A stretch of DNA of 64,000 nucleotides, taken from NCBI GenBank assembly GCA_965112155.1, contig OZ218101.1. The stretch is one strand, 5' to 3'. The stretch comes from Podarcis liolepis. Taxonomy: Eukaryota. Shown here one piece after another: positions 1-51,543 of this stretch; within the stretch, counting starts at the first letter, position 1, and each line of letters starts with the position of its first letter. The position numbers and the translations under genes are program-made. The notes below the pieces were generated by a model that had not been told where the DNA came from, ran no database searches, and saw only the letters and a list, made by a program, of their open reading frames with translations.

Positions 1-3000
1 CAGTCACCAGGCCCTCCTGCAGCTGCCACCTGGCGGGAAGGTGTGGCAGAGGGGGCAGGGGAGGAGAGCCCAGCCTGAAGGCCCTTGCCCGCCTCATCCC
101 AGAGTGACCCTTCTCTTCTCAGGTGAACAAGGACTACAAGGAGGCCCTGGCCATGCTGCGGCTGCAGGACATTGAGGAGCTGCGCAGCTATCGCCAGCCG
201 CCAGAGACTGTGGTCATGGTGACGGACATCCTCTGCCTGATGTTTGAGCAGGAGCCGGGCTGGGAGAATGCAAAGCTGCTCCTCAACAGGGACAACTTCT
301 ATGAGGTGAGGCCCAGAGCCCTTCCGGTGGCTCCGGGGCTCTTGGGGCTGGCCCAGCAGCCAGAGCCTCAAGGCCCCACTTCCCCTCTGGACCCTGGGGA
401 GAGAGAGACCCTAGCCTAGACCAAGAGGCTGTTCCAGCTGCGCCAAGTCCTTGACAAAGGGAGGGGCAAAAGCAGCCTGTTTCCTCCTGGGAGGGGGTGG
501 GGAGGCATGGCCAGCGAAACAGCATGGAACTACCAGTGGATAAAACCTGAAACCATCAGCTGCAGTAAGAGAGCAGGAAAGTAATTGAGCACAAGAGAGA
601 TACTGCAAACACATCACTGCAGTCCTCACGAAGCATGGGAAATATCCTTAAGGAAGAAGACATTGTACTGTATATATAAAATTATCCCTCAAGGGTTGTA
701 GAAAAAGTGGCCTTTTGCTCCTCCAAGGGACTCTTGAGTCCCCTCAAGCCATGATCAACCAGAGGAGAGTGGATGGAGGCAGGATCCAGTGAAAGCATGG
801 CAGATCTTTATATTTCTGTTGCAACAGAGTTCTTCCCCCTCCTCTGCAAGAAAATGAGAGAGACCAAGAACAATTCTGACTGTATTTTGGATATATCTGT
901 TAGGTTCCGTCACTTCTGTTGAACCATTTTTGTCTTGAATTTCTTTTCTTTCTGTTGCTTTCTGATACATACTGGTTGTTAACAGTAAATGCTTACACAT
1001 CTCTGGTTAGTAATTCCTTCCTTGCATGGTATTTGCTTTATTTCTTTTGATGAGTTTAATATCTATGGTTTGGTTTTCAAGGAGGGCTGCACCCAAGAAC
1101 AGAGAAGCCCACGGGAGCTGAGAGTCTAGCTGAGAGTATATAGATTGGGCTCATCTGGTCAACATTGTGCACTTAAAGCTTCAAAAAGCTTTTGATATAG
1201 TCCCTCATCAAAGACTCCTGAATAAGCTTAGCAGTCAAGGAGTAAGAGGAGAAGTCCTCTTGTGTCCTCTATGGAATTGGTTAAATCACAGGAAGCAAAG
1301 AGTAAGAATAGATGGTCTGTTCTCTGAACAAACACATGTGTAATGTGGATCAGGATCGGGACACGAACTTTTTAACTTGCACACAAACGACTCAGAGTTA
1401 GAGCTCAGCAGTGGGGTGGCCAAGTCTGCGGACAATACTAAACAAGTAAAGACTGTGAAGAGCTCCAAACGGGCCTCTCCAGGCGGGGTGAATGGGAGGG
1501 GAAATGGCAACAAAACTCATTTCTGCACAGGCCTGGGCACCTCTGGAGTGGCTCCCATGCTCTGTGACCAAAGGGGCATGGAGGCCAGGCAGAGGAGAGG
1601 CCATGTGCAGGAGCTGGTGAGGTGGACAGGCTGGAAGACCCCTCAGTCCCCTGGGTGCTTCTGGAGCTGCTGGAGAAGGTGCTCCCCTTTGGCCCATCTT
1701 CATGGTAAGCAACCGGTTGTTTTAGCTTGGGGCATTTTAATACAAGCAGCCTCGTGTTTCTTGCCCCTCATTCCTTGGTGAAAAAGGCAGGCCAGGGTCC
1801 CATTCCCTCCCTCTGCTTGCCCCTCCAGGACCTTGTCTTCTACCCCAAGGACAGCCTCACCACAGAGCTCTTTGAGGCCCTGGGCCGGGCTGTGACTCAC
1901 GAGCGCATCTCTGAGAGCAGCATATCCAGCGCCAGCCAGGCTGCGGCCGCCCTCTTCCAGTGGATCTCGGCCACCTACTGGTACCACTGGGCCCTGCTCG
2001 ACTGGCAGCCGACCATCGCACGGCTAAAGTACTGCGACGCCCAGATCAACGCAGAGAAGGTGGAGCTGGGCGACCGGCGCCTGCACTCGGAATACCTGAG
2101 AGATGCCACCCAGCTGCGCATCAAGGAGCTGAAGCAGAAGCAGGAACGCCAGGAGAAGCTGATGCACCAGCTCACCCACTCCCTGCAGGCCAAAGAGGAG
2201 GCCACCACCGTCGAGAGCTCCGTGGCCGAGCACATGGCCAGCTGGACAACTGTCACAAGGGTAAGAGGGGCGGGCGGCTGTCCACCCATGTCGTCCCCCC
2301 CGTGCCCTGCGAGGCGAGGGTGCCGTTCTCCCAGACTCAGCCCTCTGGCGCCTCTGCTTTCCTTCCTAGAACCTGGAGTCCCATCGCATAACAGTCTATG
2401 GCGATGCCCTCCTCTCCGCAGCCAGCCTCTCCTACCTGGGCCCATTCCCTCCGGAGCGGCGGGAGGAGCTGCTGGAGAAGTGGCAGGCGGTGTGTGCTGG
2501 GGCTTGGGGCCCCCTCGGGCCGGACGACGTGAGGCGGCTCCTGCAGAAGGAGCTGCCCTGCCCTGGGCCAGCCCCCCACAGCGATCTGCTGCTGGCTGTG
2601 CAACAGCCCCTGCATCTGGCGTCCCTGCTCAGCTCTCCTCCAGAGCAGCGCCTCTGGGATCGAGTCCACAAGCCCAAGGTCCCCAGCAGCCGCCTGGTCG
2701 GCATGATCCTGCTCTCCAGCATCCACTCGCAGGCTCACCGCCGGCCTCTGCTGGTGGACCCTGACAAGCAGGCCTATCTCTGGCTGCTGACATCCAGAGC
2801 TATGGAAGAGGGTGAGTGGGGTGTGCGGGTGGGGGGGGGGGTCAGGCACATGGCCTTGCCTGCGGGTAGCTGCTCATCCAACCCCTCTTTACAGCGGATT
2901 CTCAGGCCTATGCCATCTCTGACCTGGTGCCGGACATGGTGGAGCAGGGCAGCTCCATAGAGATCGCGGAAGACAACCTGGAGGTCCTGTCGCTCACAGA

Positions 3001-6000
3001 CCCAGACCTGGAGCAGAACCTCTGCAAAGCAGCCAGCCTTGGTGAGCAGAGGAAGGGGGTGCCCCTGCCGCTGGCAGTCCCCTGGGTGGGAGGGAGCCGT
3101 TCTCTTTCACCAGCGCCTCCGGGAGCTCAGGCAAATGGGCTGCTTGGCTCCCACCTCCTCACAGGCACCCCCGTGTTGCTGACGGACTTTGAAAAGAACG
3201 TCCCCTGGTGCCCAGCCCTCGAGGAGCTGATGCAGAAGGAATCGTTCGGAGGTGCCCTCCACACAAAGTCAATGGAGGACCTGGCGCAGGTGCCCCCCTG
3301 CTTCCGCCTCTACCTGTGCACTGAGCTGCCTCTGGAGGCTTTGGCTGCAGGTAAGGGAGGTGCCCAAGTGGAATCCCTCCCCAGGGAGCGGAGGTGGGTG
3401 GAGGCGGCTCAGCCACCATCTCCGGCTCCCCTCTCCGAGAGGGTGAGAGGCTTTGGAAACTTCCCGTTGCTGCGGGTGGAAGCAAAGCTAGAGTCAGCAG
3501 ATCTCTCGCCCAGCATTGGAAGCTGCGCTGTCCAAGCCCAGCAGCGACCTGCTTGGGTTCCCCAAAGTGTGGGGGGACGAGAGCCACAGGTGCCTCTACC
3601 CCGCAGCCAGCCATCGGCGGGGGACTGGGACGGCTGGGCCCTGCCTCCCGCCTGGCTCCTCTCTGCAGAGGTGGACCACGAGCTTCTCAAGAGCCTGAAC
3701 GTGATTGACCTCAGCCTCAGCCAGGAGGCGCTGGAGGAGCTGCTGCTGGTGGAGGTCCTGCGGGCCGAGCGCAAGGAGATCCTGAAGAACCAGCAGGCCT
3801 TGCAGTTTGGGATCCTGCAGCTGGAGGGGAAGCTGGAGGCCACGGAGGTGAGGCAGGGGCTCCTGGGGCTTGGCGTGGGGCGGTGGGGCGGCCGTGGAGA
3901 GGCCGCTCAGCCCAGCCCCGTGGCCCTTCCCGCAGGAGGAGCTGGTGGCCCTGATTGCCCAGCCGCAGCGCTCTCTGCTGGAGGAGGAGAACTTCATGCC
4001 GATGGTGCGGCTGCTGCAGACGCAGATCCAGGCGCTGCACGCCACCCACCAGCACATGGTCTCCCAGCACCAGGACCAGGCGGCGCTGTGCAGCAAGTAC
4101 CGGATGGTGCCCCGCCTGGGCGTGGCCCTGCACCTGGCCCTGCAGCAGGTCGGCCGCCTCCACCCCTCCTACAGCTTCCCCAGCAGCGTCTGCGTGGCCC
4201 GCGTGCGCCAGGCCCTGCTCTCCACCAAGCGCCAGGAGACCACCAAGCAGGAGTCGCTGGAGTCGCGCCTCCTGGAGCTCAGCAAGGCCGTGCTCCACCA
4301 CTGCCTGACCGAGGCGGTGCCCTGCCTGCGGGAGATGGACCGCCTCCTCTACCTCTTCCTGGGGGCCGTGGCCACGCTCAAGGTCTCGGGGGAGATCCCC
4401 CCACTGGAGTGGCTGGCCCTCTGCCAGGGCCTGCGGGAGCCGGCGGCCAAGGAGCTTCTGCAGCCGCCGGCCGGGGTGCCTCGCCCCAGCTGGGTGAGCG
4501 CGGAGGCCTGGGAGGAGTGCGGCTTGCTGGAGAACCTTCCTGGGTTCCAGGGGCTGCAGGCCTCCCTGGCTGGGCAGGCCGCCCAGTGGCAGGAGTACTT
4601 CCGCCTGCGCTCCACCATGGTGGGGCTGGCCCTGTGTCCCAGCCACGCCCACCTCAGGCCTTTCCAGCGCGCCATCCTGTGGCGCATCTTGTGTCCTTCG
4701 GCCATGAGCAGCGTGGTCTCGGCCCTCACCACCTGCTTGCTGGGCTGGTCTCTCACCGAGGAAATGGCCATCACCTACCCGTACTCCTACAGCCGGGCCA
4801 ACAAGCCCATCATCTTCCACACGCCCTCGGCCAGCTCACCAGGCTGCTTCATGCACCCGCTCCTCTGGATCCAGCAGATGGCCACCCAGCGGGGACGAGG
4901 GGTGAGCCGGGCACAAGGAGGGGAAGGGGCAATGGGTGCAGGGGTCAGTTGGGTCCCTCTGGGAGGACAGAGCAAGTAACCAGGCCCCACCCTGCAGGGA
5001 AGTGTGGTAGTCATCTCCTTTGGCACCCCAGATGCCTGCAAGCGGGTTTGGCGGACGTTGCCCATCTGCAGCAAGAGAGGCAAGTGGCTGGTCTTGACCA
5101 ACTGCCACCTCCAGGAGCACTGGGACCCCGACTTGCTGCAGCTGCTGGACCAGTTGGTGAAATCCTCAGGTGAGGCGGATGGAAGCAGCGGGAGGTGTCT
5201 CTCTCCCCCCGGCCAAAGCCCCTCTCACCTTGCCCTCTTTTTGCACAGGCAAGGTGCCAGGGGGAGGCCTCGAGATCCACACCAAGTTCCGCCTGTGGCT
5301 CATCACTGCAGCTGACGCCCCTCATTCCATGCCAGGTACCAGGCCAGGGAGGGGGGAGGGAGGCACGGCCAGAGGGGCTTCTCCACGCCCTGCCTACCCC
5401 TTGGGGAAAGAGGCGCACTGCCCCGCTTTGCATCTCTCTCTCCCCCAGGGCCCCGCTCCCTCTTGCTCACTGTCATCTGGGCTCTCTCCCACTGCCGCTG
5501 CCTCTGCGGGAGAAACCGAAGCTGAGCAACTTCTCATGGCCTTGGCTGTCCTTACTGTCCCTCCCAGCCTCTGCTGTGGTGGTTGATTCTCTTCTGTGCC
5601 AACAGAACTCCTGAAGCGCAGTGCCACCTCCCTCTTCTGCGATATGCCACTGGAGCTGAAGGGCATCCTGGCACGCAGCCACTACTGGCTGCAGGGGCGA
5701 ACCCAGAACCTAGACACAGAGCAGCGGCTGCCCCTCCTCGCCCTCTATGGGGTCCTGCTCTACAGGCAGACCTATGCCCAGTGGACCCAGGCAGAGACAT
5801 ACCTGTGGTGAGTGAAGGAGGTGCTCGCCCTGTCCAGCAGCGAGGCAAAGAGCCTGCCAGTACATCTCATGGGAGCTTGGAAACTCCTCCTCTGCTTTAT
5901 GCTACTTGGAAAGCACCCTGAATCGCCACCTGTGGGCTCCCCATTCTTCCCCTGCTCTTGGAGCTGCCTCTGTGGGCTAACAAACCAGTCCTTGCCCACA

Positions 6001-9000
6001 GAGGGGGCTGCTGGCTGCAAGGGGGGGGGGAGCAGAGTGGGAAGCAGCAGCAGCAGTGGCGGATGAGGGCTTGGATCCCCCAGCTGACAGGCAGCCAGAG
6101 AAAGGCTGAGGGCTTTCTCCCTGCAGCCCTTTCTGGCAGCAGCAGGAGGAAGTCCCCTTACCTCTGCCTCACAGAATTCAACAGGGCTCCCCAGAGCAGG
6201 TGAACTGGAGGGTACCCGGGACGCACCCATGGAAGCTGCCAAGTAGGATGAGCCTAAGGAGTCCTGCAGCAGCCGGATCAGGCCAAAGGGGCTCCATCTA
6301 GTCAGCCTCCTGTTCTCACAGTGACCAACCAAGAAGGTCGTGAGCAGGAAGGGACCCCATGAGCCACAGCAGTCCAGACCCCACTTGTTAGGGGTTTCTT
6401 TTGCCCCAAAGTACATCACTTTTCCTTGAGCTGTATTGAGGATGTAAGAGCCGCCTCCTGGATCAGGCCATCTGGCCCAGCCTCCGGTTCTCGCGTGGCC
6501 AACCAGAGGCACACAGGAGCCCCAGAGCCCTCTCCCCTCGCGCCATTTCCAGCAGCTGCCCCAATGGTGGAGGAAGAGGACTGCCATTGTGGCTCCTCTT
6601 TAGAGATGGTGGCCGGCACTGCCTCCTGCGAGAGCAAGGGCCATCGCCTGGCTCTGTGCTGCAGGAAGAACCTTCTTTCAGCTGCCCTGAATCTTCTGAC
6701 CTTCAGCTTCACTGGACAGCCACGAGTTTGAGGGTTATGGGGGAGGGAGGAAGTTTCCCCCTTTCCACTTAGCGTGTGCCATGTTGCCCCTCACCTGTTG
6801 AACTAAAGAGTCCCAAATGCTGCCCCTTTCCTTGCAAGGGAGTCGCTCCAGCCCCTCAGGGGGCCCCTCCTGAACCTTTTCCGACTCTGCAATAACCTTT
6901 TTGAGGGGAGAGGAGGTGCCCAGAACTGTATATAGTTCTTCAAATGTGGGCACACACCAGATTCCTGAAACGGCATGATGATACTGGCAGTTTTATTCTC
7001 AATTCCTTTCCTACTGATCCCTCGCATGCAAATTTCCTTTTTCATGGCTGCCACACTGGAATACTTTGTACATCCCACAATTGGGAGAACCACCTATTTA
7101 TTCTTACTTCCTGTTTCTTAACCTGTTTCCCACTGATCCCAAAATGAAGTTTACCCAAGAATCTTTCATAGAACCAGAATTGTGGGGGCCCCCAAGGGTC
7201 CTTTAGTCCAAGCTCCCGCAATGCGGGAATCACAGCTAAAGACTCCTGCTTAAAATCCTTCAGTGAAGGAGAGGCCTGTCCCCTGCCAAGGTCTTCTGTT
7301 CCACTGCCCAAGGGCTCTTCCTCTCAGCTGCTGAGACCCATAAGAAAGTTGGGAGCAGCCCCCCCCCCCCCGGGCCAAGATGGTCCTCACTCTGGCAAGC
7401 CAGGAGTGTGGTTTTTGCTCTGACCCTGCCCTGTGCCTGAGATTGTGCTGCCCTTGCAGGAGCCACGGGGAAGTGTTGGCCGGGCTCAGAATCCAGGAGA
7501 GGCTGAGCTGCCTAACAGACGGAGCCCAGGAAGCCCTGCAGGAGCTGGCTGGTATGGAAACAGGGCTGAGTGAGGGGTGCAAGGGGACAGCCTGCAAGAG
7601 CCAAGGCCTTGAAGGCCCCCTCCGAAACACGGCTGCCTCTTGTGCCTCTGCAGGGACCATGCTCTACGGGGGCCACATCCTGGACAGCGGGGATGCCCAA
7701 GTGGTACAGAGCCTCTGCCAGGCCTGCTTGGCTCCTGCCTCCCCCCTGCAGCCAGCCTCCAGCCTCCAGCAGCTCGTGGCCACAGTGGTCGGCTGCCCCA
7801 ACCCAGGTGAGAGAAGATCAGAAGAGCCGGCTGGGTCCAGCCCAGCATCCTGTTCTCACTGGGGGAAACCCGCAAGCGGGACTCAAGCACAAGAGCAGCA
7901 CCCTCCCCGCCTGCGGTTTCCGGCAAGGGGGGTTTGGAAGCGGCAGTGGGTGGCCATGTGGGGCCCTTCATGAATTGGGAAGAGCCTGCCGGTGGGGGCG
8001 CTGGGTGCTCTGCTGACCCCCTCCCTTTCCTTGCACCCTGCAGGGAACACGGATGAGGAGGCGGCCGCCGCCACCCAGGCCGGCATCGAGCAGCTGCCCA
8101 GCCCCATGGAGCCTGCCGGGATCGGCCTGTGCAGCGCGCTGCAGCAGCGGATGCTGGCGGAGCGGAGCCAGGCCTTGCTGGTGGCCTTGCAGGCCTCCCA
8201 GGGCCTGTGGCAACCCCGCCGGGCCCCCTGCCGCCCGCACACAGGGGCCCTGGAGCAGCTGCTGCGGGACGGGATCCGGCTGGTGCAGGCGCTGCAGGAG
8301 CAGCTGAGCGAGTGCGGCTGGGAGGTGGGCTGGAAGGGGTGCCCCCCGCAAGGGCAGGCCCGCCCCCGGCCGCGCCCCCTGCAGCGCTTCCTGCTGGAGG
8401 AGGCGGGCATCCTCCTGGCCCTGCTGAAGCAGGTGGGTCGCGACCTCTGCTGCGCCCAGGAGCACCTGCAGGGGGAGCCCTGCTCCTCCCGCCGCTGCAG
8501 CACCATCCTCTACCACCTGAAGCAGGGCCGCCTGCCCAGCCCCTGGCTGCCCTACGCCCTCACCGGCCCCCAGGCCCCCCCGGCCTGGCTGCAGACGCTC
8601 AAGCAGCGGACCCAGCTCCTGTGCAGCTACCTGGGCTCCATCAGCGGGCCGCTCGTGGCCCACTACCAGCTGGCCGCCTTCCACCAGCCCCGCCGCCTCC
8701 TCCTGGCCGTGCTGCAAGAGAGGGCCCGCGTCGAGAGGCAGGAGCTCCACCGCTACCAGCTGCACCAACAGGTAGGGAGGAGAGGGCGGGCATGGGGGCA
8801 GGCACAGGGGTAGGCCCCGCAGGCCCGGTCCCTGAGCGCCCCCTCCCTCTTGCCTTCCTTTGCCAGGTCCTTCCCAGTGGGCCACCCCCCACCAGCGCCC
8901 CCGAGAAAGGCATCTACCTGAGCGGGCTGGAGCTGCGCCACGCCTTCTGGAAGGCCCAGAGTGGGCTGCTGCAGGAGAGCCGCACGGCAGAGCCCTGCCC

Positions 9001-9307
9001 GCTGCCCACCATCTGGATCCAGGCCGCCCGCCTGACCTGGGACATGGCCTCCGCTGGCACCACCCCCAAGCTCCCAGCCAACAAGTTCCTGTGCCCCGTC
9101 TACCTGGGGGTCCCCGAGGTCCCTGTGGCGCTGGGCAGCCAGCACGTCATCCTGCACCTGAGCCTGCCTTCCAAGATGGCCCCGGAGCTGTGCCTCCAGC
9201 AGCGTGTGCACGCCGTCAGCCTCCTGCGCTGGGAGGGGGACAGCAGCACGGGGCAAGGGAAGCGCCCTGCCCCCTCCCCCAGAGCCCCCTCCCCCTCCCG
9301 GGCTTAA
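1..9307 (+). CDS. DNHD1: Dynein heavy chain domain-containing protein 1, 3' portion (5' end outside window)
   Basis: GT-AG exons: <1-40, 123-305, 1829-2260, 2370-2811, 2895-3041, 3165-3350, 3669-3847, 3936-4901, 4998-5169, 5249-5335, 5606-5807, 7460-7551, 7654-7806, 8044-8771, 8867-9307 (TAA). Dynein-HC-like motifs: ELRSYRQPP, GDALLSAASLSYLGPF, RRPLLVDPDKQAYLWL, GKWLVLTNCHL, HTKFRLWL, LYGGHILD, GIYLSGLEL, CPVY. Position next to RRP8/ILK matches DNHD1. Confidence 0.88.
1140..1460 (+). mobile_element. Degenerate CR1 LINE reverse transcriptase fragment
   Basis: Degraded translation resembling VDIVYLDFQKAFDxVPHQRLLNKLSSQGVRG and xKFADDTK; stops and indels present. Confidence 0.7.
6790..7065 (-). 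mobile_element. Degenerate CR1 LINE ORF2 C-terminal fragment
   Basis: Minus-strand peptide GISRKGIENKTASIIMP...PHLKNYIQFWAP...EKVQ, typical of the CR1 C-terminus. Confidence 0.7.
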
Positions 9308-9515: not shown

Positions 9516-12500
9516 TCATTTCAGGTCCACGTCAAAATCCAAAACAAGCAGCTTGGTCTCCTCAGTCCCGTTGCGGCTTCCCACGGCACACACCAGCTTT
9601 GTGTTGGAGGCCCGGATGCGCCAGACCACCCCCCCGCTGCCGCCACTCTCCAGCGCCACCAGGTTGCGCACAAACTCGCCCGTCTTGAGGTCCCACAGCT
9701 TGACGGTGCCGTCGTCTGAGCTGGTCACCACAAACTTGGAGCTGAACTGGAGGCAGGTGACGGCACTCTGGTGCTTGCTGGGACCTGCAGAAGGGGGGCA
9801 AAGAAGGTGAGAAGCAGCCATCAGCTGCCCTGCCCAGCCGCCTCTTCCCGGAGGACGCCCCTGGTGGCAGGCCTCTGCCCAGAGGGAAAAAAACCTCCCC
9901 CCGCCCCCCAGGACTTTGTGAGGTCCAATGGGGAGTTTCAGCTCCCTGCAGCCCAGCCAGCTGCCCGCAGCACCCACCTTGCAAGGTCTGCAGACACTGG
10001 CCCGTCTTGATGTCCCAGATCTTGACCGTGGAGTCGGCGTTGCCAGAGACCAGGATGTTGTCGCGCAGCTCCATGCCGCTGGTCAGCGACTGGTGCCCCA
10101 TCAAGGTGTGCAGGCAGTTGCCGCTCTCGGCGTCCCACACGCGGATCGAGGTGTCCAGGGAGCCGCTCACAATGTGGGTCCCATCAAACTGCGCAAGAGA
10201 GGGGTGGGAGGAGTGAGGGGCTGTGCGACTCGGGGGGTGGGGAGGGAAGGGGTCGGGGTCCCTCACCTGCAGGGAGTAGACGCGATTGGTGTGGCCTTGC
10301 AAGGTGTGGATGCAGCTCTCCGTCTCGGGGTCCCAGACCTTGACCGTGTAGTCGTAGGCGCCACTCACCACCTTGTGCCCGTCGTACTGGACGCAGCGGA
10401 CGGCGGCCACGTGCCCCATCAGCACGTGCAGGCACTGCCCTGTCTCGATGTCCCAGAGGCGGAGGGTGGCATCCCGGGACCCGCTCACCACCCTGCCCAG
10501 GGAGGAGAGACAAGCAGCTTGAGTCCCAGGCAGGAGGGGCAGGAGGGGCCCTGGAGCGACTCCCCCCCCACCTACCTGCTGCCGTGGAGGTGCATGCAGC
10601 GCACGGTGGAGGTGTGCCCGTAGAGGGTGTGCACGCACTCGCCCGTGTCCGCGTTCCACACCTTGAGGGTGCGGTCTGTTGAGCCGCTGATGACGATGTT
10701 GTCCCTCATCTGGGAAGACCAGACGCCCCCCGTGTGCCCCACCAGGGTCTGAACGCACTGCAGGAGGAGGAGGAGGATGCTCAGAGCCAGGGAAGGCGGG
10801 GCCACAGCCAGCCCCGCCCACAGCACCATTTCCCAGACTCACCTCCCCGGTGACAGCCGACCACACCTTGAGCGTGTTGTCATCTGAGCCGCTCACAATG
10901 CGGTTGCCGCAAAACTGGAGGCAGGTGATGACGTGGTCATCGTGGCCCTTCAGAACCTGGTCCAGGGAGAGAATGAGCAGGCCAGCCGGCATCACCCTGC
11001 GCCCCCTTTCTGCGGTTGAGGGAAGGGGCGGCTTCCTCCCCAAGCCCAGTGGCCTTGAGTCTTCCAAGGCTTGAGACCAGGCCCAGCGGTCAGGAGCTGG
11101 CATCAAGCAGGCGGACTTCAAATTCAGCAAGGGCTGGAGGCTCAGCCACAGTGACAGCCCCAATTCAAGGAGCAACCAAGTCTCTCCCCCCCCCCCCCCA
11201 TTTGTGAATAGCCAGAATAATTCTACCTTCTGGATCTTCTTTGCCAGAAGTCAAAGGTGCTTGCCTGGTCCACCTAGCTCAGCAGCAGCAGCAGCAGCTC
11301 TCAAGAGTATGGGGCACATGTCTGTCCCAGCCCACCACTGAGCCCTGGCCCCTGCCTGGTATAGGACAGGGACCCAGCTGGGCACCCAGGCGTTGGGTTG
11401 CTCTTCCTCCAGAGCCTGCTCTTTGGTCCCCATCGTGCAGCCACCCCAGAGATCCCAGAGTAGTGTCTTAGCCCATGACGAGGTGCGCAAACCCCGCACC
11501 ACGTCACCCCAATGGGTGGGGTCAAGGGAGGTCCCCTACCTTGGGGGGGCGGGCATCCCCGCCACGCCAGTTCATGTCGATTCGGTGCTGCCGCAGGAAG
11601 GCCAGTTTCCAGGGGCTGTACATGAAGCCTGGGCTGAGCAGCCGGCGCTTGCGCAGACTCAGGGGCTCCTCGATACCTGCAGGAGGCAGAAGCGGCTGTG
11701 AGAGGGAGGAGGCCCAAGGGCAGCCGGGAAGCAACACTGGGCAGGAGCTGAGCCTCACCTGCATCGCGGCACTTCTCCCGCCACAACAGGTTGTCCTCGG
11801 CCAAAATCCGCCAGTAGCGACAGGTCTGCGCCGCCCGGAGCAGGTCCCGCGGCTCCAGGAACGAGAGCACATAGAGCGCCAACTGCAAAAGATTTCCTCC
11901 CGTGAATGGCAAGCCTGGGCAGCTTCTCACGTCCACCACAGCAATGTGGAGACTTTGCCATCTAGGTGACCTTTCACCCTCACCAGCCGAACATCTGAAG
12001 CAGCCGTCCAATGCTCCTCCAAGAAGAGAGCTGGCTCAGAGCCTGTGGTCCACACCCTCCTCCCACACAGCAGCTGTCAGGGCCACTGTGGCCACACAAT
12101 CCCAAACTGCTTCACAGCCCCCAAGGCCTCTCCTGCCTTTCCAATCCAGCACAGAGTCTGCGGCTGAGCTCCCTGTCCTGACCATCTGGGCCCATCTCTT
12201 GCCCTCCCAGCATCCTCCTGCCATTTCTTATTGTCCTCCTTGCCACTCCCGTCTGATTTGGCTTTCTTTGGATGCGTTACAGAGGGCTCCCTATGACACA
12301 ACTTCTGCTCTAAAAATGGTAGCCTGCACCTCACAAGGGAAGTTCTGCTTTGGCCTGGAGAGGCAGGGAGAGAGCGTCCATTACATTAGCTCGTGTATGC
12401 GGACGTTCAAGCGAGCTAAATCCATTGACCGCTGTCTCTTCCCTCCCTTGGCATCTTTGACAGCCTCCCCTTAATGTTTGTATATTTAAAAGTTTAGAAA

Positions 12501-15500
12501 AAGGAGCTGTTGACTGAAAGTGTTCAGCCCGTCTGCCACTTATGACAACACCATTTAAAACCATTTAACAATCACTTTCAAAAAACCAAGATTTTGTACT
12601 CTGCATCTGTTTACATTTTGAAGCCTAATTTGAGCATAAAGCCCAACTTTTGCCTTTTGGATCCCAGAGGCCTGATTTCCCTGCCCAATTACCACCCACC
12701 CACTTCCTCTTCTCCACCACTTTCTGCTGCACATTGAGCAGCTGCCCTGGAGAGACAAGGCCTGGGACCCCTGCCGCTTGCTCTTGGCCAGGCTCTCTCC
12801 CACCCTCCCTCTCTGGGGCTGATTCGTTCTTCCTCCCTCTTCCAACGCCCTCTGCTGCTGCTCCTTCCCTTGCCTGTCTCATTCCTTTTTCTCCTCTTTG
12901 GCAGGATCTGAACTCTGGCTCTTAGCTTCTCACCAGGCCTTCAGGTTCTCCGATAACTTTGATTCTTGCCGTTAAAAGTTTCCCAAGGCCTTGTAATCAA
13001 ATCAAATAGCTCCTTCTCTGATGTGTCTCATCTCCTGCTAAAGCAACTGGCTCTACTCCATTTTCCTGCTGGTACCACATTTGCACTTCAGATAAAGTTC
13101 TCTTGTTCCCGTCTCTCTCTGTTACTTCATCCTAGTGTTTCTGTGAGGTTTCATGCACACTTTAAAAATGTGTAGCTGGTATGAATAGTTCTGACTCTTA
13201 TTTGTTTTAGACACAGGTAGGTAGCCGTGTTGGTCTGACGCAGTCGAAATAAAAATTAAAAAATAAAATTGTCCAATACTGCCTTATAGAGCAACTAAGT
13301 TTGTTCTGGTATAAGCTTCTGTGTGCATGCGCACTTCTTCGCTTCTTTTACAACTACCTCTCGTGTCCCCTTGTCCCCCCTCTTGACTATGGCTCGGATT
13401 CTGATCTCCTGACCTGTTGCTCAAGGCTTCCTAACAACACCCTGCAGGCTCAGTCTCCCACCAACACCTTCGGCCAACATCTCCCCACTGTCCTCTCTCG
13501 GCTGCCCTGCATTCTTCCTCCGAGGGCCCCCACCCCCCAAGACACTCACCTCTTTGGGAAGCAGCGATATGAAATCGCGCTGGAATTGGGGCTCAATCAC
13601 TTGCATCATGTGCTTGATCTGAGGCGGCTCACAGCCGTCAATGAGCTCATCCAGAGCCAGCAGCTTCTCTGGGCCGCTCCAGCGCTGGCGGGAGAAAGGA
13701 GTAAGGGGAGATCAAGCCCAAAAGCCAGGACTGCAGCCCGTCTCTGCGCCAGAACCAAGGCCACAAAGCAGCCCATAAAAGCAATCAAGGCAAAAGCTTT
13801 GTAGCTTTCTAAATGTTGAAACACCACCAATGCATCAGCTCACTTTTAAGATCAAACCCCTAAAACAAAATAGGAAATGAGAAAGACACCACAGCACAAC
13901 ATCTGCCAAATGCCGTGGAAAAAGGCCTTTGCCGAATGTCAGAAGGTCAGCTGCCAGCCAGCCAGAAAGCAGAGCCCTGCTCTGGCTCCAGCCGAAGGCC
14001 TCAGGCATGACACACAGACAGGCGCCTCTGCCTGCCGCTCACCTGGAAAGTGCGCAGCCAGTCCTGCAGCTCAGGGGGTGGTGTCATTGGGGGGACATGC
14101 CGGCAGCGCGCCTGGCCTGCCTTGGCGTTCCGCAAATCCCCAAAGGTGGCCGTGGGGCTAGCGACACAGGGGCCCAGCACTCTGGAGAGGAAGCAAGTAT
14201 GTCAGGAGAATGCCATGGCCAGGGGCCCAAGTCAAGAGTCCTGCTGGAGACAGACCCCCTGTCTCCCCCGGCACCTTGCAGGAGCTCCCAAGCGCCACCC
14301 GCAACCTCCTCACCTGCCCCTCTCCGAGCCCTTGCACAGCTTCTTGCCAGGCGACTGGGCTCTGCCATCCGGGCCGCTCTCTGACTTGCGCTTCATCTGC
14401 AATGCAAAGAGATGGGGCGGATCCAGGAAACCCTTCAGCTCCGCAAGAAGACAGGCTATGCACTGCACGCAGCACCCCCTCCTGATGCACAGCGCTGCAT
14501 CAGGTCAAGTGGGGACCCTTCTTGCCGCCTCCACCGCACAGCAGCCATGCCAGGACCCCCATGCCTCCTGCCTCCCCAAAAGACTGGAAGGTTGAACACT
14601 TTCTCTCAGAACACAGATCTACAAACTGTGCTTTGGGAGAACAACCTCGTAAGGGCAGGAGGTGGGGAAGAAAGACGCAGCATGCAGCAGCCCTCTCCCC
14701 ACCTGACGGCCTTTGCCTGTCATCCTTGGAGCCTTGATGGCCAGAACACACCCGAGAATCACAAGAGCCTGCTGGGTGCGGCCAGGCCCATCAAGTAAAG
14801 ATAAAGGACCCCAGTTTAAGTCCAGTCAAAGGTGACGATGGGGTGCTGTGCTCATCTCACTTCACCCTGAGGGAGCCGGTGTTTGTCCACAGACAGTTTT
14901 TCCAGGTCATGTGGCCAGCAGGACTAAACCGCTTCTGGCACAACCGAACACAGTGACGGAAATCAGAGCGCACGGAAATGCCATTTACCTTCCTGTCACA
15001 GAAGTACCAATTTATGTACTTGCACTGGCATTCTCTCAAACTGCTAGGTTGGCAGAATCTGGGACAAAGCAACAGGAGCTCAGCCCATTGTGCAGATTCA
15101 AAAAGGGATGTGAATGGGAGTGTGGTCTAAACCACACTGACCCTCTTGGGCTTGCTGATCAGAAGGCCCGTCCAGTCCAGCCCTCTGTCCCCACAGTGGC
15201 CAACCAGGTGCCCATTAAGGAAACCCCCAGGCACAATCTGCCCAAGAACAACACTCCCCCCACCCCTGGTCACCTGTCCAGCACCTGCTTTTCAGAGGCA
15301 TCGCTGCCTCCTACTGCGCAGGGCAGAGCATGGTTAGCCATAGTGGCTAGCTGCCCCCAACAGCCCCTCCTCCATGAACTGCAGACTTAAAATCTGCACA
15401 GGAAAAATGTGCTCCGACTTCAAAAATTCCTCCACTGAGGAGGGAAAAAAAGATATAACAAACACGGCATTAAATTCAAGAGCTCCCCCCCCCCACTCGT

Positions 15501-16667
15501 TTTGGTCAGCACAGTCCCTTGGCTGCACCCCTGAGAAACGGTCAGCACAAGCACTGATGCCACAGACATTTCCAGGAGGAACCTGAAGGTCCTGGCCAGC
15601 CTCCCTGGGCCAAAGAGAAGACCAGCCCCCTGGCATGGACACTCTCAGCTGCTGCTGCACCCCGGAGCCCCAGTCCTTTCTCTGGGCTCCCTTCCCCAGG
15701 CAGCTCCCGAAGAGGAGAAGCGTCCGCTGGATCTGGCCCACCCCGGGCAGCCTCCTGCTCTGCCGGGGTCTCCCTCCTCCGGTTCTCTCCCCCCGCAGCC
15801 CCTTCTTCACCTTCGGCCGCGTGTGCCGGATGAGGCCGCCGCCCTCCGTCCGCTCCAGGTAGTCGATCCAGCGCTCGTCCACCGTGTAGTAGAAGTAGAC
15901 GTCCCCGCCGCCGCCGCTGCCGCCGCTCTCCTCGCCATCGCTGCTGCCGCCGCCGCTCGTCTCATCCTCGGAGTCGGGAGCGCCCGGCGGGCAGGAGCTG
16001 CCCGGCTCCTCCTCCTCCGGCTCCGCCTCGGCCGCCAAGCAGGCCGGCGCCCAGCTCTCCCGCTGCCCGGGACGCGGCGGCGACTGAGCCGCCTCCTCGC
16101 CCGGAGCCTGCGGGGGGAAGCGGGCCGCGGGGTTGAGCGAGCCTCGGCCCAGCCGCCCGCCCCCCGCCCGGCTCTCTTCCGCCCGCCTCCCGCCCGCCAA
16201 GCCCACCTCGGGCGCCGGACAGGCGGCTCCGGCGGCTCCTCGGGCGGGCTCCGGCTGCTGCTGCGGCGGCGGCTCGCAGGTCATCCGCTGGCTGTTCAGC
16301 TCCAGGATCCGCGCCGTGATCCCCTTGACGCGCAGCAGGTCGTCCAGGGAGGCGAAGCCCTTCAGCTCCTGGCGGGAGAGGGGCGCCCCGTCACGCACCG
16401 AGAGGAGGGGAGAGGAGCCCCCGGAAAGCCCCCCCCCCAAAGCGGGGCCCGGGGAGGGAAGCAGCCCCCCTCCCGGTGGGGGGAGGGAAGGGAGCGGGCC
16501 CCTCGGACGCCTGGGTCCCTCACCTCCCGCTTGCGCACGATGCCCCGGGCCCGGCGGCGCCCGATGCCGACCAGCGCCCGCTCCAGCTCCGCCACGCAGG
16601 CCCGGTTGATGTCCAGCTTGCCCCCGCCGCCGCCGCCGGGGCCCGGCCCGCCCGCCGATCCCGACAT
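9516..16667 (-). CDS. FBXW7 paralogue with N-terminal ComEA-like helix-hairpin-helix domain (HhH-D domain-F-box-WD40), 740 aa
   Basis: 13 GT-AG exons: 16667-16524, 16368-16207, 16107-15811, 14396-14314, 14181-14043, 13684-13550, 11882-11759, 11676-11540, 10956-10843, 10757-10576, 10492-10267, 10188-9978, 9784-9516; total 2223 nt, in frame. FBXW7-like motifs: [67 protein letters not shown]...[13 protein letters not shown]. Exons 1-2 encode [55 protein letters not shown]. Confidence 0.9.
13214..13340. mobile_element. Penelope-like element terminal fragment
   Basis: GTAGCCGTGTTGGTCTG...A-rich...AACTAAGTTTGTTCTGGTATAAGCTT...CACTTCTTC resembles reptile Penelope termini. Confidence 0.55.
14796..15102 (-). 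mobile_element. Sauria SINE (degenerate)
   Basis: Reverse complement of the Sauria SINE tail and body (GGTCATGTGGCCAGC, AACTGCTAGGTTGGCAGAA); similar to the copy at 39028. Confidence 0.7.
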
Positions 16668-16736
16668 CGCCGCTGCCGCCGCCGCCGCCCGGACTCGGCC
16701 GGACTGCGCTTGCGCCCCCGCCGCCGCCCCTCCCTC

Positions 16737-16856
16737 AACTACAGCCCCCAGCAGGCATTGCGAGACGAGACGAGACACTTCCGCTTCGAGAGAAAAGCGC
16801 TTTATTCAGAGCGAGGCGGCGGCGGCCCAGACGAAGCCCCGCCCCCCGTGGCGTCA
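16737..16856 (-). promoter_or_regulatory. Predicted core promoter of the FBXW7-like gene (ZNF143/THAP11-type SBS, ETS, GC box, half-CRE)
   Basis: Plus-strand text: AACTACAGCCCCCAGCAGGCATTGCG at 16737-16762 (ACTACA-extended Staf/ZNF143 motif), CACTTCCGC at 16776-16784, CCCCGCCCCC at ~16837-16846, GCGTCA at 16851-16856. Confidence 0.65.
16801..16806 (-). terminator. RRP8 polyadenylation signal AATAAA
   Basis: TTTATT on the plus strand, about 48 nt past the RRP8 stop. Confidence 0.75.
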
Positions 16857-19800
16857 CCGCCGCTTGTAGAGGCAGGGGCGGAGCGCCAGGCCCGGAAGAG
16901 CCCCTTCGCCCCGCCCCTTCCGCTTCGCCGCTTCCGCCTTGCGCAGCTCGAAGGTGAAGAAGTGGCTGCCCGTCACGTCCTGCAAGGAGAGGAGAGGAGA
17001 GGAGAGGGAAGGCCATGCGGAGGCGCGCGCGGGCCGGAGGGGACCTCGCGCGGCCCCCGGGAGGGAGGAGGGAGGGAGGGAGGGAGGAGACCCACCTTGC
17101 GGAGGAGCCGGAAGCCGAGCCGGGCCAGCGCCGCCCCGAAGGCCCGCACGTCCGGGAAGCGGCTGGCCACCTCGGCCACCAGGAGGGTCCCCCTGCGAGG
17201 AGAGACGGAGGGGGGAGGTCAGCCCGCGGGGCGGCAGGAAGGACCAGCGGGGAGGCTGAGCGAATCCTCCAGCCGGCAGAAGCATCCCTGAGCAGGACAT
17301 CCCCCCCCCCCGGTGTGTGTGTCAGGAGGGCACCTGCAGGACCCGGGAGGGGCTGGGAGAAGGCTTGGTCGGGGCCCCAAAGAGAGGGGCCCCAAATGCT
17401 ATAGGTCATTGTTTTTGCTGGTGCTTTGAATGGTTACCAATCATGTAATCCTTTCCCCCTAAGCAGTCCAGGGAACACTTGCTTCTTTTATTATTGCATT
17501 TCACGTCAGGAAACCTCAGAGGGTGCCTCAGAAACAGCCCCTTCCCACCTTCGGAAATTTAAAATGTCTCTTTTACAGTATTTCATGTCCTGTAACCCAG
17601 CCAGATGGGCCGGATACAAGCAATAAAATTATTATTATTATTATTACTATTATTATTCACAATGACCCAGAGCTGCTGCGTCGGATCCTGTGGCCGACAT
17701 GTAGCCACTGAGAGCCTTCCTTCTCTCTCCAGGGCTTCAGACCCAGGGGTCCTTCTCTGAGCTCTGCCTGGAGCTGCCATGGGTGGGTGTGAGTGGGTGA
17801 ACCCAAGACTTCTGCCTGGGAAGTCTCCACTCCCACCAAAGCTCTTCCTGACCAGAGAGTCACATCCTTCTCCTCGCGACTTGTTTTCAAAGGCAATTGA
17901 TGCCGAGGACTGATTTTAAAGGATGCAAGCAAACTTTAGATCAGGGGGGCTTCATGCATATTTTCAGGACTGTTTTGATACTGAAATAGAAAATACATAA
18001 ATAGTGGTATTTTCAATATTCAAGTTAGTTATGCTGAAATTTTGCTACTAAACAGATTTAGCTGATTCACTGCCTCAAGGCTCTTTGCAACCATCATTAA
18101 TTCATTGCCTAAATATTAATAAATGTATATTAACATAATCCTTTATTTTAGTAATATCTTTTGCTTAAGCTGTTGTTATTTCAGTTTTCTGTACAACACT
18201 TAAAAAGATTCTGACTATATCTCTATTAATATATTATTAATATTTTAATATTTCTGACTAGAAAACCCAGTCAGATGGGCAGAGTATTATTTTTATTATT
18301 AAGCAGCATAGGTATTAAATATCATCATCCCCATATGACAGCCATAGGTTTTGACTGAGCTGGCAGTGCCCTGATCAGCCATTTCACGTGTCCCCCTCCC
18401 TGCCACAGCCCCTCCCATGCCAGTGAGCCCAGGACCCCACAATTACCCAACTCGTAGCACACGGTTGGCCTCTTCCAAGATCTCCTGCAGGTTAGTACCC
18501 ATCAGTGCCAGGCAGAACACAGCCACGTCAACAGATTCATCATCCAGGGGGACCTGCACAGAGGGAGCAAAAAGAGGGAGGCACAATCGGAAAAGCATGT
18601 GTGTGAGGTAGTCATAGAATCATGGAGCTGGGAGGGACACCCAAGGGCCGTCTAGTCTAACCCCCTGGAATGTAGGAATCACACTCAATGCAGCCCTGAC
18701 ACGTGGCTGTCCAAGCTCTGCTTAAAAGCCTCCAGTGAAGCAACGCCCACCTGCATGGGCTCATCACACAGCTGTTCCCAAGCCTGGAGAAGGCAGGTGC
18801 TGTGAGGAGGCCCTCCCCCCAACCTACCTGGGCCATGTCGCAGACAATGACTCGGGGGTCCAGAGCCACCAGGTCAAAACAGTGGACTTTGTTCCGCACG
18901 CTGCGTGCCAGCATGCAGTCCCCGCAACCGAAATCTGCCACCACGAGTGATGCTGGTCTGTGAGGGGAGGGGCAAAGTTAGACCGTGCACCCATCCTGTC
19001 AAACACTTCTATACGTTAACTATGACATTGCAACACGCGCGGATGTTTGCTTAACCAGCACATGTTGAAGGGGGGGAGCCGGCCAATCCCCCCCCATCGT
19101 TACCTCTGACGCAGGTAGCGCACAAAGCGCTGCACAGGGTTTTCAGGCCACTGGGCCACCTGCCGGGCAAAGCCCCGGTGATACACTGCCAAGGCCTCAG
19201 GGTCATCCTGGAAGAGCTGGACCGCCTGCTGGCTGGAGGATGTGTAGAGCTGCTGGTTGATGAAGCGGAAGCGCGCAGACTCCAGCCGCTCCTCCATGCG
19301 CAGCCGCAGGGACGCTGCCCTTTCGCTGAGAGGTTCCTGGCCTGCTGGATCTTCCTGGCTGCTGGGGGGCTCCTCTGCTGCTGCTGCAGAGGCCAAAGGG
19401 GGCTCCTCGCGGCCCAGCCCTGCCTTGAACCTGTTCTGGCGACGCTTGTTCTTCTGGCGGTTCTTCCACTGTCTCCTGGTCAGCCGCTGCCTTGGCTCCT
19501 CCTCTGGGTCCTTTGCCCCAGCGCTCCTCTGCTTGCTGCTGGGCTCAGGGTCTCCACCTCCAGCCGCTTTGTCTGGACAGGGCAAGGACAGAGGTGCTCA
19601 GCCCTGGGCTCCATCGCTCCCCCTCTCTAGAGTCCAGGGCTCTGTGCACTGACTGCTGGTGGCCACAACCCTCTGGGGTTCCAGGCAGAGGACCAGCCCC
19701 CAGCCCACCCGGAGAGGCCCCCAGGGACTGAGATGCAGGGAAGGTTCCATAAGATTATAAGAGCCTAGTCCAGCATCATGGCCTTACAGTGGACCACCCT

Positions 19801-40716: not shown

Positions 40717-41762
40717 GTTTGCAAACTATGGCAAGTTCTTAAAGAAATGGGAGTGCCTGATCATCTCATCTGTCTCCTGCGAAATCTCTATGTGGGACAA
40801 GAAGCTACAGTTAGAACTGGATATGGAACAACTGATTGGTTCCAAATTGGGAAAGGAGTACGGCAAGGCTGTATATTGTCTCCCTGCTTATTTAACTTAT
40901 ATGCAGAATTCATCATGCGAAAGGCTGGGCTGGATGAATCCCAAGCCGGAATTAAGATTGCCGGAAGAAATATCAACAACCTCAGATATGCAGATGACAC
41001 AACCTTGATGGCAGAAAGTGAAGAGGAATTAAAGAACCTTTTAATGAGGGTGAAAGAGGAGAGCGCAAAATATGGTCTGAAGCTCAACATCAAAAAAACG
41101 AAGATCATGGCCACTGGGCCCATCACCTCCTGGCAAATAGAAGGGGAAGAAATGGAGGCAGTGAGAGATTTTACTTTCTTGGGCTCCATGATCAGTGCAG
41201 ATGGTGACAGCAGTCACGAAATTAAAAGACCCCTGCTTCTTGTGAGAAAACCAATGACAAACCTAGACAGCATCTTAAAAAGCAGAGACATCACCTTGTC
41301 AACAAAGGTCCATATAGAAAAAGCTAAGGTTTTCCCAGTAGTGATGTATGGAAGTGAGAGCTGGACCATAAAGAAGGCTGATCGCCGAAGAATTGATGCT
41401 TTTGAATTATGGTGCTGGAGGAGACTCTTGAGAGTCCCATGGACTGCAAGAAGATCAAACCTCTCCATTCTGAAGGAAATCAGCCCTGAGCGCTCACTGG
41501 AAGGACAGATCGTGAAGCTGAGGCTCCAATACTTTGGCCACCTCATGAGAAAAGAAGACTCCCTGGAAAAGACCCTGATGTTGGGAAAGATGGAGGGCAC
41601 AAGGAGAAGGGGACGACAGAGAATGAGATGGTTGGATGGTGTTCTTGAAGCTACTAGCATGAGTTTGATCAAACTGCGGGAGGCAGTGGAGGACAGAAGT
41701 GCCTGGCGTGCTCTGGTCCAGGGGGTCACGAAGAGTCGGACACGACTAAACGACTAAACAAC
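40717..41762 (+). mobile_element. BovB (RTE) LINE, 5'-truncated, with uninterrupted 336-aa RT C-terminal ORF
   Basis: ORF 40747-41757 with GVRQGCILSP and LRYADDT motifs; 11-bp TSD AGCTGTTTGCT at 40706-40716 and 41763-41773. Confidence 0.95.
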
Positions 41763-51200: not shown

Positions 51201-51508
51201 GGGCGGCTGGGGTGCTCAGCACGGTGGTGCCTGGAGGGGGAGGCAGCCGGGGGGGGCAGGCCTTTAGGAAAAGAACATCCACTTCCCGAAGGAAACCTGC
51301 TTTGCTGTTAGTGGAAGATTCAGGACAGATACCAGCAAGCACAGAGCTAAGCCACGGAACTCCCTCCCACAAGAGGCAGGGATGGCCACCAACTCAGATG
51401 GCCGTGAAAGAGGTTTAGGTAAATCCATGGGGGGGGGGCTCCCGAGGGCCCCTAGCCAGGATGCCTGTGCCCACCTCTTGTGCTCTGGTCCTGCTTGTGG
51501 GTTTCCTA

Positions 51509-51543
<35 letters not shown>

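Follow-up and report, generated by a model that had tools for sequence, protein, structure and literature searches.

The window analysed here is a stretch of 64,000 nucleotides (nt) of Podarcis liolepis DNA (contig OZ218101.1 of assembly GCA_965112155.1). On its minus strand, from position 16667 to 9516, lies a gene that we call FBXW7L, which encodes an FBXW7-type body preceded by a helix-hairpin-helix (HhH) head, a domain of the (HhH)2 type. The reading frame was re-derived across this interval, which gave 13 exons with 2223 nt, corresponding to 740 codons and a TGA stop. Exon-by-exon translation revealed no internal stop and no frame break in any of the 13 exons. GT/AG borders are present on all of them, and exons E1, E2 and E3 consist of 48, 54 and 99 whole codons, respectively. 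Tests on the window were run for each exon separately, and tests requiring a whole protein were run on the database orthologues P0044, P0148, P0038 and P0006. The exons are as follows (P0044 and P0148 are proteins of Podarcis muralis; codes such as 7t1y_B denote chains of solved structures of human FBXW7):

16667-16524, minus strand: E1, with the ATG start, a Gly-rich tail and the first half of the (HhH)2 domain (ATG...GAG/gt; residues 17-48 correspond to 16619-16524).
16368-16207, minus strand: E2, with the second half of the (HhH)2 domain (16368-16276, beginning ELKGF), followed by a variable Pro/Ala-rich tail (ag/gt borders).
16107-15811, minus strand: E3, a disordered acidic Glu/Asp/Ser/Gly linker with a conserved motif at its end (15903-15811; ag...AAG/gt).
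14396-14314, minus strand: E4, the MKRK exon, first of the FBXW7-type common region (27/27 identical to P0044).
14181-14043, minus strand: E5, a linker with an S-P site and a squamate-specific PPMTPPPE (46/46 identical to P0044).
13684-13550, minus strand: E6, the FBXW7-type dimerisation (D) domain (44/45 identical to P0044).
11882-11759, minus strand: E7, the F-box (phmmer against PDB, human FBXW7).
11676-11540, minus strand: E8, a helical linker that leads from the F-box to the WD40 propeller (comparison with P0044 and human 7t1y_B).
10956-10843 and 10757-10576, minus strand: E9 and E10, WD40 propeller (identical to P0044).
10492-10267, minus strand: E11, WD40 propeller (identical to P0044; matches 2ovp_B, 5v4b_B and 7t1y_B).
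10188-9978 and 9784-9516, minus strand: E12 and E13, WD40 propeller, with the TGA stop at 9518-9516 (identical to P0044).

Comparison with Podarcis muralis confirmed this model. E1 and E4-E13 of the window show 98-100% identity to the protein of P. muralis, with 48 of 48 residues of E1 identical in P0044 and P0148, and the E1/E2/E3/E4 boundaries of the window recur in the RefSeq protein XP_077782918.1 (P0148, 736 aa). Intron 2 (16108-16206) is 99 nt long, in frame and without stop codons. Two P. muralis models (P0044, P0137) and one Zootoca model retain it; in P0148 and in the RNA-type contigs described below it is spliced out. A first-pass annotation, made from the letters alone, had proposed the three exons upstream of the MKRK exon, and these were placed and translated as it claimed, as whole codons with AG/GT borders. 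It is nearly certain that the FBXW7L gene model at this locus is real.

In order to look at transcription, Logan contigs from four small runs (four studies, two organisms) were compared with positions 14250-16900. The run label "RNA?" is a guess, and it is the presence of the joints themselves that identifies the contigs as derived from spliced RNA. The joint 14396<->15811, which reads CT..AC on the plus strand and therefore GT..AG on the minus strand, was found in all four runs, as expected from the proposed splice of the upstream exons onto the MKRK exon. The E1-E2 joint (16367<->16523) was likewise present in four of four runs. In two runs the E2-E3 joint took the form of a 193-nt skip containing 82 unlike letters; loss of the 99-nt intron 2 together with a diverged, 12-nt shorter low-complexity flank would give this pattern. 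The read check that had been suggested for the three upstream joints is thus answered by two joints seen in four runs and one seen as this skip in two. Individual contigs reach further: contig X1 record 4 (1914 nt) runs from E3 into E4 and onward past the compared stretch, contig X13 record 7 (785 nt) runs from E3 through E4 and further downstream, and one 1321-nt contig spans E1, E2, E3 and the first 28 nt of E4. Continuity from E1 to E13 is strongly supported by these data, not proven, as contigs cannot prove single molecules. FBXW7L is an intact, transcribed FBXW7 paralogue of 740 residues.

One could regard the locus as a decaying or mis-assembled copy whose splice pattern is coincidental, considering that the region is GC-rich and that long chance open reading frames (ORFs) are common there. 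No direct support for decay was found, and all 13 exons are open with canonical splice sites. The presence of spliced joints, the near-100% identity to the P. muralis protein and the conservation of the gene across jawed vertebrates in the tree described below rule out a pseudogene or chance ORFs, and we consider this explanation scarcely credible.

The N-terminal head was searched exon by exon against Pfam. HHH_3 (PF12836) matched E1 over profile positions 5-35 (22.9 bits) and E2 over positions 38-61 (14.1 bits). The two halves of the profile abut, and therefore intron 1, which cuts the HhH coding sequence after RKRE, splits a single domain. In orthologues in which the domain is undivided, PF12836 scored 47.5 bits (P0006) and 51.4 bits (P0042), with a curated cutoff of 27 bits. 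E1 and the HhH part of E2 in P0044 and P0148 are identical to the window, and P0044 carries a precomputed PF12836 annotation. The (HhH)2 domain comprises residues ~17-79 of FBXW7L. Among solved structures the best sequence match to the head was EEPD1 (9yi2, E 3.3e-7, with both HhH pairs of EEPD1), and ComEA was matched as well (8dfk, E 6.5e-5; another at E 2e-3). The assignment to a ComEA/EEPD1-type (HhH)2 domain in the first-pass annotation is upheld by these matches, and the combination of HHH_3, F-box and WD40 that it had expected was found both by exon and in database orthologues. AlphaFold2, with an alignment of only 21 sequences behind the models, predicted four to five helices for residues 11-75 with a predicted local distance difference test (pLDDT) score of ~80-89, both for the fragment alone and within the full-length protein.

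Conservation of the head was assessed in 21 orthologues. The mean pairwise identity of the HhH part was 0.75, compared to 0.33 for the linker, and 25 columns were invariant, among them those of the hairpin glycines and of R33, R35, R37, R41, R43 and K59. The G-I-G of the first hairpin is invariant across FBXW7L orthologues, and the net charge of the domain ranges from +2 to +9. From sharks to birds, E1 retains its ATG, its reading frame and the first hairpin of the HhH. Judged by these alignments, the HhH head is under strong purifying selection from sharks to birds.

The remaining exons encode a typical FBXW7 body. When E7 was compared with PDB by phmmer, human FBXW7 (5v4b_B and 2ovp_B) was retrieved with E 1.2e-20 and ~36 of 40 residues identical, and the F-box-like profile PF12937 scored 57-60 bits in orthologues. 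P0044 aligned to human FBXW7 (7t1y_B) without gaps over 445 residues (E 2e-281). The degron-binding arginine motifs SGSRD, AAVRCV and TNRVYS are unchanged between P0044, whose E9-E13 are identical to the window, and 7t1y_B; we take these arginines to be the phosphodegron-binding triad R465, R479 and R505 of human FBXW7. The D domain (E6) has a mean pairwise identity of 0.94 in the 21 orthologues, and its C-terminal part aligns to 7t1y_B. By sequence, then, FBXW7L bears the marks of the FBXW7 family, namely the F-box, the WD40 arginine triad and the D domain.

Human FBXW7 (2OVP/2OVQ/2OVR, 5V4B, 7T1Y) and FBXW7L share the D domain, the F-box and the eight-blade WD40 propeller, and in both the N-terminal exons are joined onto a common MKRK exon. 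They differ in what these exons encode: FBXW7L starts with (HhH)2, an acidic linker and an aromatic motif, while canonical FBXW7 has its alpha, beta and gamma exons. The claim that canonical FBXW7 lacks the HhH held, with no PF12836 on canonical FBXW7 rows.

A small difference between lineages was seen in E5. At 14070-14093 squamate FBXW7L has PPMTPPPE, where other lineages have SVAPPPE. T-P-P-x-E is like the core of a Cdc4 phosphodegron, and one may speculate that it is a self-recognition site.

In order to place FBXW7L relative to canonical FBXW7, a maximum-likelihood tree was calculated from 38 sequences, covering MKRK to the end and rooted on amphioxus. FBXW7L and canonical FBXW7 formed two clades, each with 100/100 support and each containing cartilaginous and bony vertebrates; hagfish took a weakly supported position outside the two. 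FBXW7L and canonical FBXW7 are both present in Podarcis muralis, in Pristis and in Protopterus. The separate clade, the presence of both genes in the same species and the different neighbours (see below) identify FBXW7L as a paralogue and not as the canonical orthologue. Together with the open 13-exon frame and the gap-free alignment of the body, the separate clade confirms the first-pass description as an intact FBXW7 paralogue. Since cartilaginous and bony vertebrates are present in both clades, the duplication is at least as old as jawed vertebrates. The HhH design likewise dates at least to the jawed-vertebrate ancestor.

Proteins annotated with HHH_3, F-box and WD40 occur in sharks, rays, chimaera (V9KHD6), lungfish, caecilian, newt, turtles, squamates, birds and echidna, and most of the entries are named "F-box/WD repeat-containing protein 7-like" in RefSeq/UniProt. 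The idea of a new or lineage-specific fusion therefore has to be given up, as the same architecture is already found in these databases from sharks to birds and echidna. The FBXW7L entries of platypus and coelacanth are partial. No therian mammal, teleost or frog FBXW7L was among the hits, which is suggestive of absence from these groups and not proof of it. The monotreme proteins (echidna P0074, platypus P0075) have a long branch with 0.24 changes per site; in the echidna P0074 isoform the HhH is joined straight to MKRK without E3, and in platypus P0075 just a remnant of the end of E3 is left (MDYLDGSDTGGLVPPK).

The head may predate vertebrates, because an amphioxus FBXW7 model (Branchiostoma belcheri KAI8500021.1, P0112) begins with a homologous HhH: its residues 3-77 are 42% identical to the FBXW7L HhH, with the ILELN...C tail of the domain shared (E 7e-13). 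As in FBXW7L, the HhH is followed by a linker, MKRK and the FBXW7 body. The hairpin region of the amphioxus protein is less basic, and it lacks the acidic tract and the YFYY..W.DYL motif of FBXW7L. The protein is represented by one gene model, which contains internal duplicated segments, and a search of a protein atlas with its N-terminal part gave no usable hit. A search with the HhH alone of a shark protein let just 55 candidates through its word filter and has no bearing on invertebrates. The comparison suggests that the HhH head may be ancestral in chordate FBXW7 and that canonical FBXW7 may be the copy without it, a suggestion drawn from one imperfect gene model.

In the literature searched, no description of an HhH-bearing FBXW protein was found, in agreement with the earlier remark that no characterised F-box/WD40 protein of this architecture was known. 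The Xenopus "Fbxw7-like" genes are specific to Xenopus, have moderate similarity to Fbxw7 and show no HhH among their listed domains (PMC4556705), and for these reasons they were rejected as FBXW7L. Zebrafish is without a reported second fbxw7 (PMC3404928), and canonical Fbxw7 is the sole one mentioned in a paper on the Lbx paralogon. The HhH-FBXW7 architecture is thus known to databases and unstudied in the literature searched.

Between the head and the body lies the part of the protein that has no counterpart in known domain families. E3 gave no Pfam match, and among 1.84 billion representatives its relatives were FBXW7L orthologues only. An acidic tract precedes the motif YFYY..W.DYL at the end of the exon (15903-15811), in which Y, Y and D are invariant and W is nearly so from shark to bird. 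This motif is confined to jawed-vertebrate FBXW7L. No sign of docking of the motif in cis was seen, with pLDDT values of ~50 for the fragment and ~42 for the full-length protein in the AlphaFold2 models built from only 21 aligned sequences. It is probably a short linear motif for a partner outside FBXW7L.

Considering the combination of domains, we propose that FBXW7L is a substrate receptor of an SCF (SKP1-CUL1-F-box) ubiquitin ligase that acts on or near chromatin via DNA contact of its HhH head, and we assign this reading a probability of roughly 0.55. The F-box would recruit SKP1-CUL1 and the propeller would recruit FBXW7-type phosphorylated substrates. The very basic HhH head would make sequence-independent contacts with double-stranded DNA (dsDNA), and the D domain, by pairing two heads per dimer, would add avidity, so that the ligase acts on or near chromatin. 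In such an arrangement the N-terminal exons would set the place of work of the ligase, a role that in canonical FBXW7 falls to the alternative first exons (alpha, beta and gamma).

The proposed tether has parallels in KIF22/Kid and EEPD1, where dimerisation or tethering of (HhH)2 domains aids dsDNA binding; for the DNA-tether mechanism taken by itself, the odds are roughly even. F-box proteins with DNA-directed modules are known: KDM2A, KDM2B and FBXL19 carry a CXXC zinc finger and FBH1/FBXO18 a UvrD helicase. They share the concept of an SCF receptor with a DNA-binding module, and belong to the leucine-rich repeat or helicase class and not to the WD40 class; their DNA-binding folds are different as well. 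To our knowledge, none of KDM2A, KDM2B, FBXL19 and FBH1 uses an HhH. In KIF22/Kid, one C-terminal HhH per chain, in the tail of the protein, holds dsDNA, and dimerisation stabilises the binding (PMC13581288); KIF22/Kid is a kinesin motor and not a ubiquitin ligase receptor. EEPD1 (9YI2) acts on dsDNA as a dimeric scaffold that bears flexibly attached (HhH)2 domains, several of which are needed on the dimer for dsDNA (PMC12988330). EEPD1 combines two (HhH)2 domains with an EEP nuclease-fold domain and is without F-box or WD40, in contrast to FBXW7L with its one (HhH)2. No EEP domain was found in any FBXW7L exon or orthologue examined, and the likeness between FBXW7L and EEPD1 is limited to the HhH. 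ComEA (8DFK, 8DSS, 2DUY) has a single HHH_3-type (HhH)2 with the same spacing as in FBXW7L and gave the best per-domain match among solved structures (25.4 bits). This bacterial competence protein is homologous to FBXW7L at the level of the domain only, and it is reported to bind incoming DNA (PMC3879209).

Several observations weigh against chromatin tethering by the HhH head. Isolated (HhH)2 domains of EEPD1 are without stable DNA binding (PMC12988330). Domains of this type can also mediate contacts between proteins: PMC12988330 cites XPF-ERCC1 as an example for (HhH)2 and Mus81-Eme1 for dimerisation by HhH domains, and the HhH of ComE1 binds fibronectin (PMC2601033). The second hairpin of FBXW7L reads K-G-I-T, with one Gly, and not G-h-G. 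A Foldseek search of PDB with the N-terminal model gave no significant match (top ComEA at E 0.63 and KIF22, 2EDU, at E 0.94), and VIA-align against 48,161 chains returned Z values of 3.2 at most, for unrelated helical proteins only; no conclusion can be drawn from these fold searches, because the domain is too small for both methods. The basic head is followed by a long acidic tract, which might mask it. It is also conceivable that the Arg/Lys patch does no more than direct the protein to the nucleus or nucleolus. On the transcript side, low-depth unspliced contigs (14369-14898) lead out of intron 3 into the MKRK exon, of which they cover the first 28 nt; these could be pre-mRNA, or could reflect an internal start giving a protein without HhH from the MKRK methionine. 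Models of 539 aa starting at this methionine exist in Lacerta, Zootoca and Podarcis (P0135), and forms of FBXW7L without HhH may coexist with the long one. Finally, RefSeq models of many birds and of P. muralis (P0049) join the penultimate exon of the upstream gene RRP8 (...LGFRLLRK, donor near 17096) to E2 (acceptor 16368), and this joining would yield conjoined RRP8-FBXW7L proteins without E1 and the first HhH hairpin.

Part of these observations can be taken together in the main competing explanation of the same gene, namely that the head is a nuclear or nucleolar localisation signal or a module for docking to protein or RNA, and that the E3 motif is a second docking site. The resemblance of the Arg/Lys patch to a basic targeting signal, the behaviour of the isolated EEPD1 domains and the known roles of HhH domains in XPF-ERCC1, in Mus81-Eme1 dimerisation and in fibronectin binding all favour it, as does the E3 motif, which is conserved yet predicted by the models to be undocked. 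The first exons of the canonical FBXW7 isoforms are localisation determinants, which also counts for this explanation. The entire 60-residue fold is conserved, however, including the hairpin glycines and the N-cap Asn, and this is more than a targeting signal alone needs; moreover, ComEA and EEPD1, the nearest sequence relatives of the head, are DNA-binding modules. We regard such a role of the head as possible, though on the unlikely side.

A second explanation concerns the transcripts: the HhH exons might be used for the most part in non-productive transcripts or in RRP8-FBXW7L transcripts that are conjoined or arise by read-through, and the main protein would then start at MKRK and have no HhH. 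It draws on the RefSeq models that join RRP8 to E2, the 539-aa models and the unspliced contigs abutting E4, as well as on the closeness of the two genes, since just 133 nt separate the poly(A) signal of RRP8 from the ATG and one contig is unbroken from RRP8 into E1. As mentioned for the E1-E13 continuity, contigs cannot prove single read-through molecules either. The conservation of the E1 frame, ATG and first hairpin from sharks to birds would make no sense if E1 were untranslated and therefore counts against such transcripts as the main product. In addition, a stand-alone HhH-FBXW7L is modelled in dozens of species including the chimaera (V9KHD6), and spliced E1-E2 joints were present in every run. 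We judge this explanation improbable, clearly more so than a localisation or docking role.

Returning to a receptor held at chromatin, a bolder version can be formulated, which we put forward only tentatively and consider somewhat more prone to fail than to hold: that the HhH head is the ancestral N-terminus of chordate FBXW7 and truly anchors a dimeric SCF ligase on DNA or chromatin. If so, FBXW7-type phosphodegron substrates would be ubiquitinated at their places along the genome. Canonical FBXW7 would be the one copy that therian mammals still have and a derived, untethered version, and most other jawed vertebrates as well as monotremes would have kept an FBXW7 activity bound to chromatin and never studied so far.

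FBXW7 is among the most-studied tumour-suppressor ubiquitin ligases, and the location of its isoforms decides which substrates are reached. Most jawed vertebrates keep a second FBXW7-type receptor that has the same degron pocket and a head of a DNA-binding type. By established divergence dates, the head of FBXW7L has been conserved for more than 400 million years. If it binds DNA, FBXW7L would be a natural WD40 F-box receptor aimed at chromatin-bound substrates, for which birds, turtles, lizards and newts could serve as models, and one would have to ask what took over this activity in the groups for which no copy was seen, namely therian mammals, teleosts and frogs. If it does not bind DNA, FBXW7L is still an uncharacterised FBXW7 paralogue. 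Studies on the turnover of Notch, Myc and cyclin E in non-mammalian models should reckon with FBXW7L.

The neighbouring features in the window are as follows:

16801-16856, minus strand: 3' end of RRP8, with the stop TGA at 16856-16854 and AATAAA at 16806-16801.
2927-9304, plus strand: dynein heavy-chain (DNHD1-like) exons with AAA_9 and Dynein_C, convergent to FBXW7L and ending ~200 nt from its stop.
45265-59539, minus strand: long cadherin-repeat exons of the DCHS1/FAT type.
40747-41754, plus strand: reverse-transcriptase ORF (RVT_1), a retroelement.

FBXW7L is thus flanked by the dynein gene on one side and RRP8 on the other, with cadherins further on. This is the order known from human 11p15.4, and it differs from the one around FBXW7 at 4q31. 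The identity of RRP8 was taken from the fused models P0049 and P0009. With only 133 nt between the AATAAA of RRP8 and the ATG of FBXW7L, the promoter and the 5' untranslated region of FBXW7L must be in or beside the end of RRP8. The contig that is unbroken across this junction (X3 record 18) starts from beyond 16900. The naming of FBXW7L as "RRP8 isoform" is widespread in RefSeq and deserves correction or explanation.

Between the two genes, a short upstream ORF was noted on the minus strand at 16758-16735 (ATG CCT GCT GGG GGC TGT AGT TGA). It is out of frame with the main ATG and would be translated if transcripts begin upstream of 16758.

Intron 3 of FBXW7L contains a repeat at 14784-15228, for which the summed depth in RNA-type contigs was up to ~58,000; many sequence variants were seen in it, as were strand-switch joints. 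By its appearance the repeat is an abundant transposable element resembling a short interspersed nuclear element (SINE).

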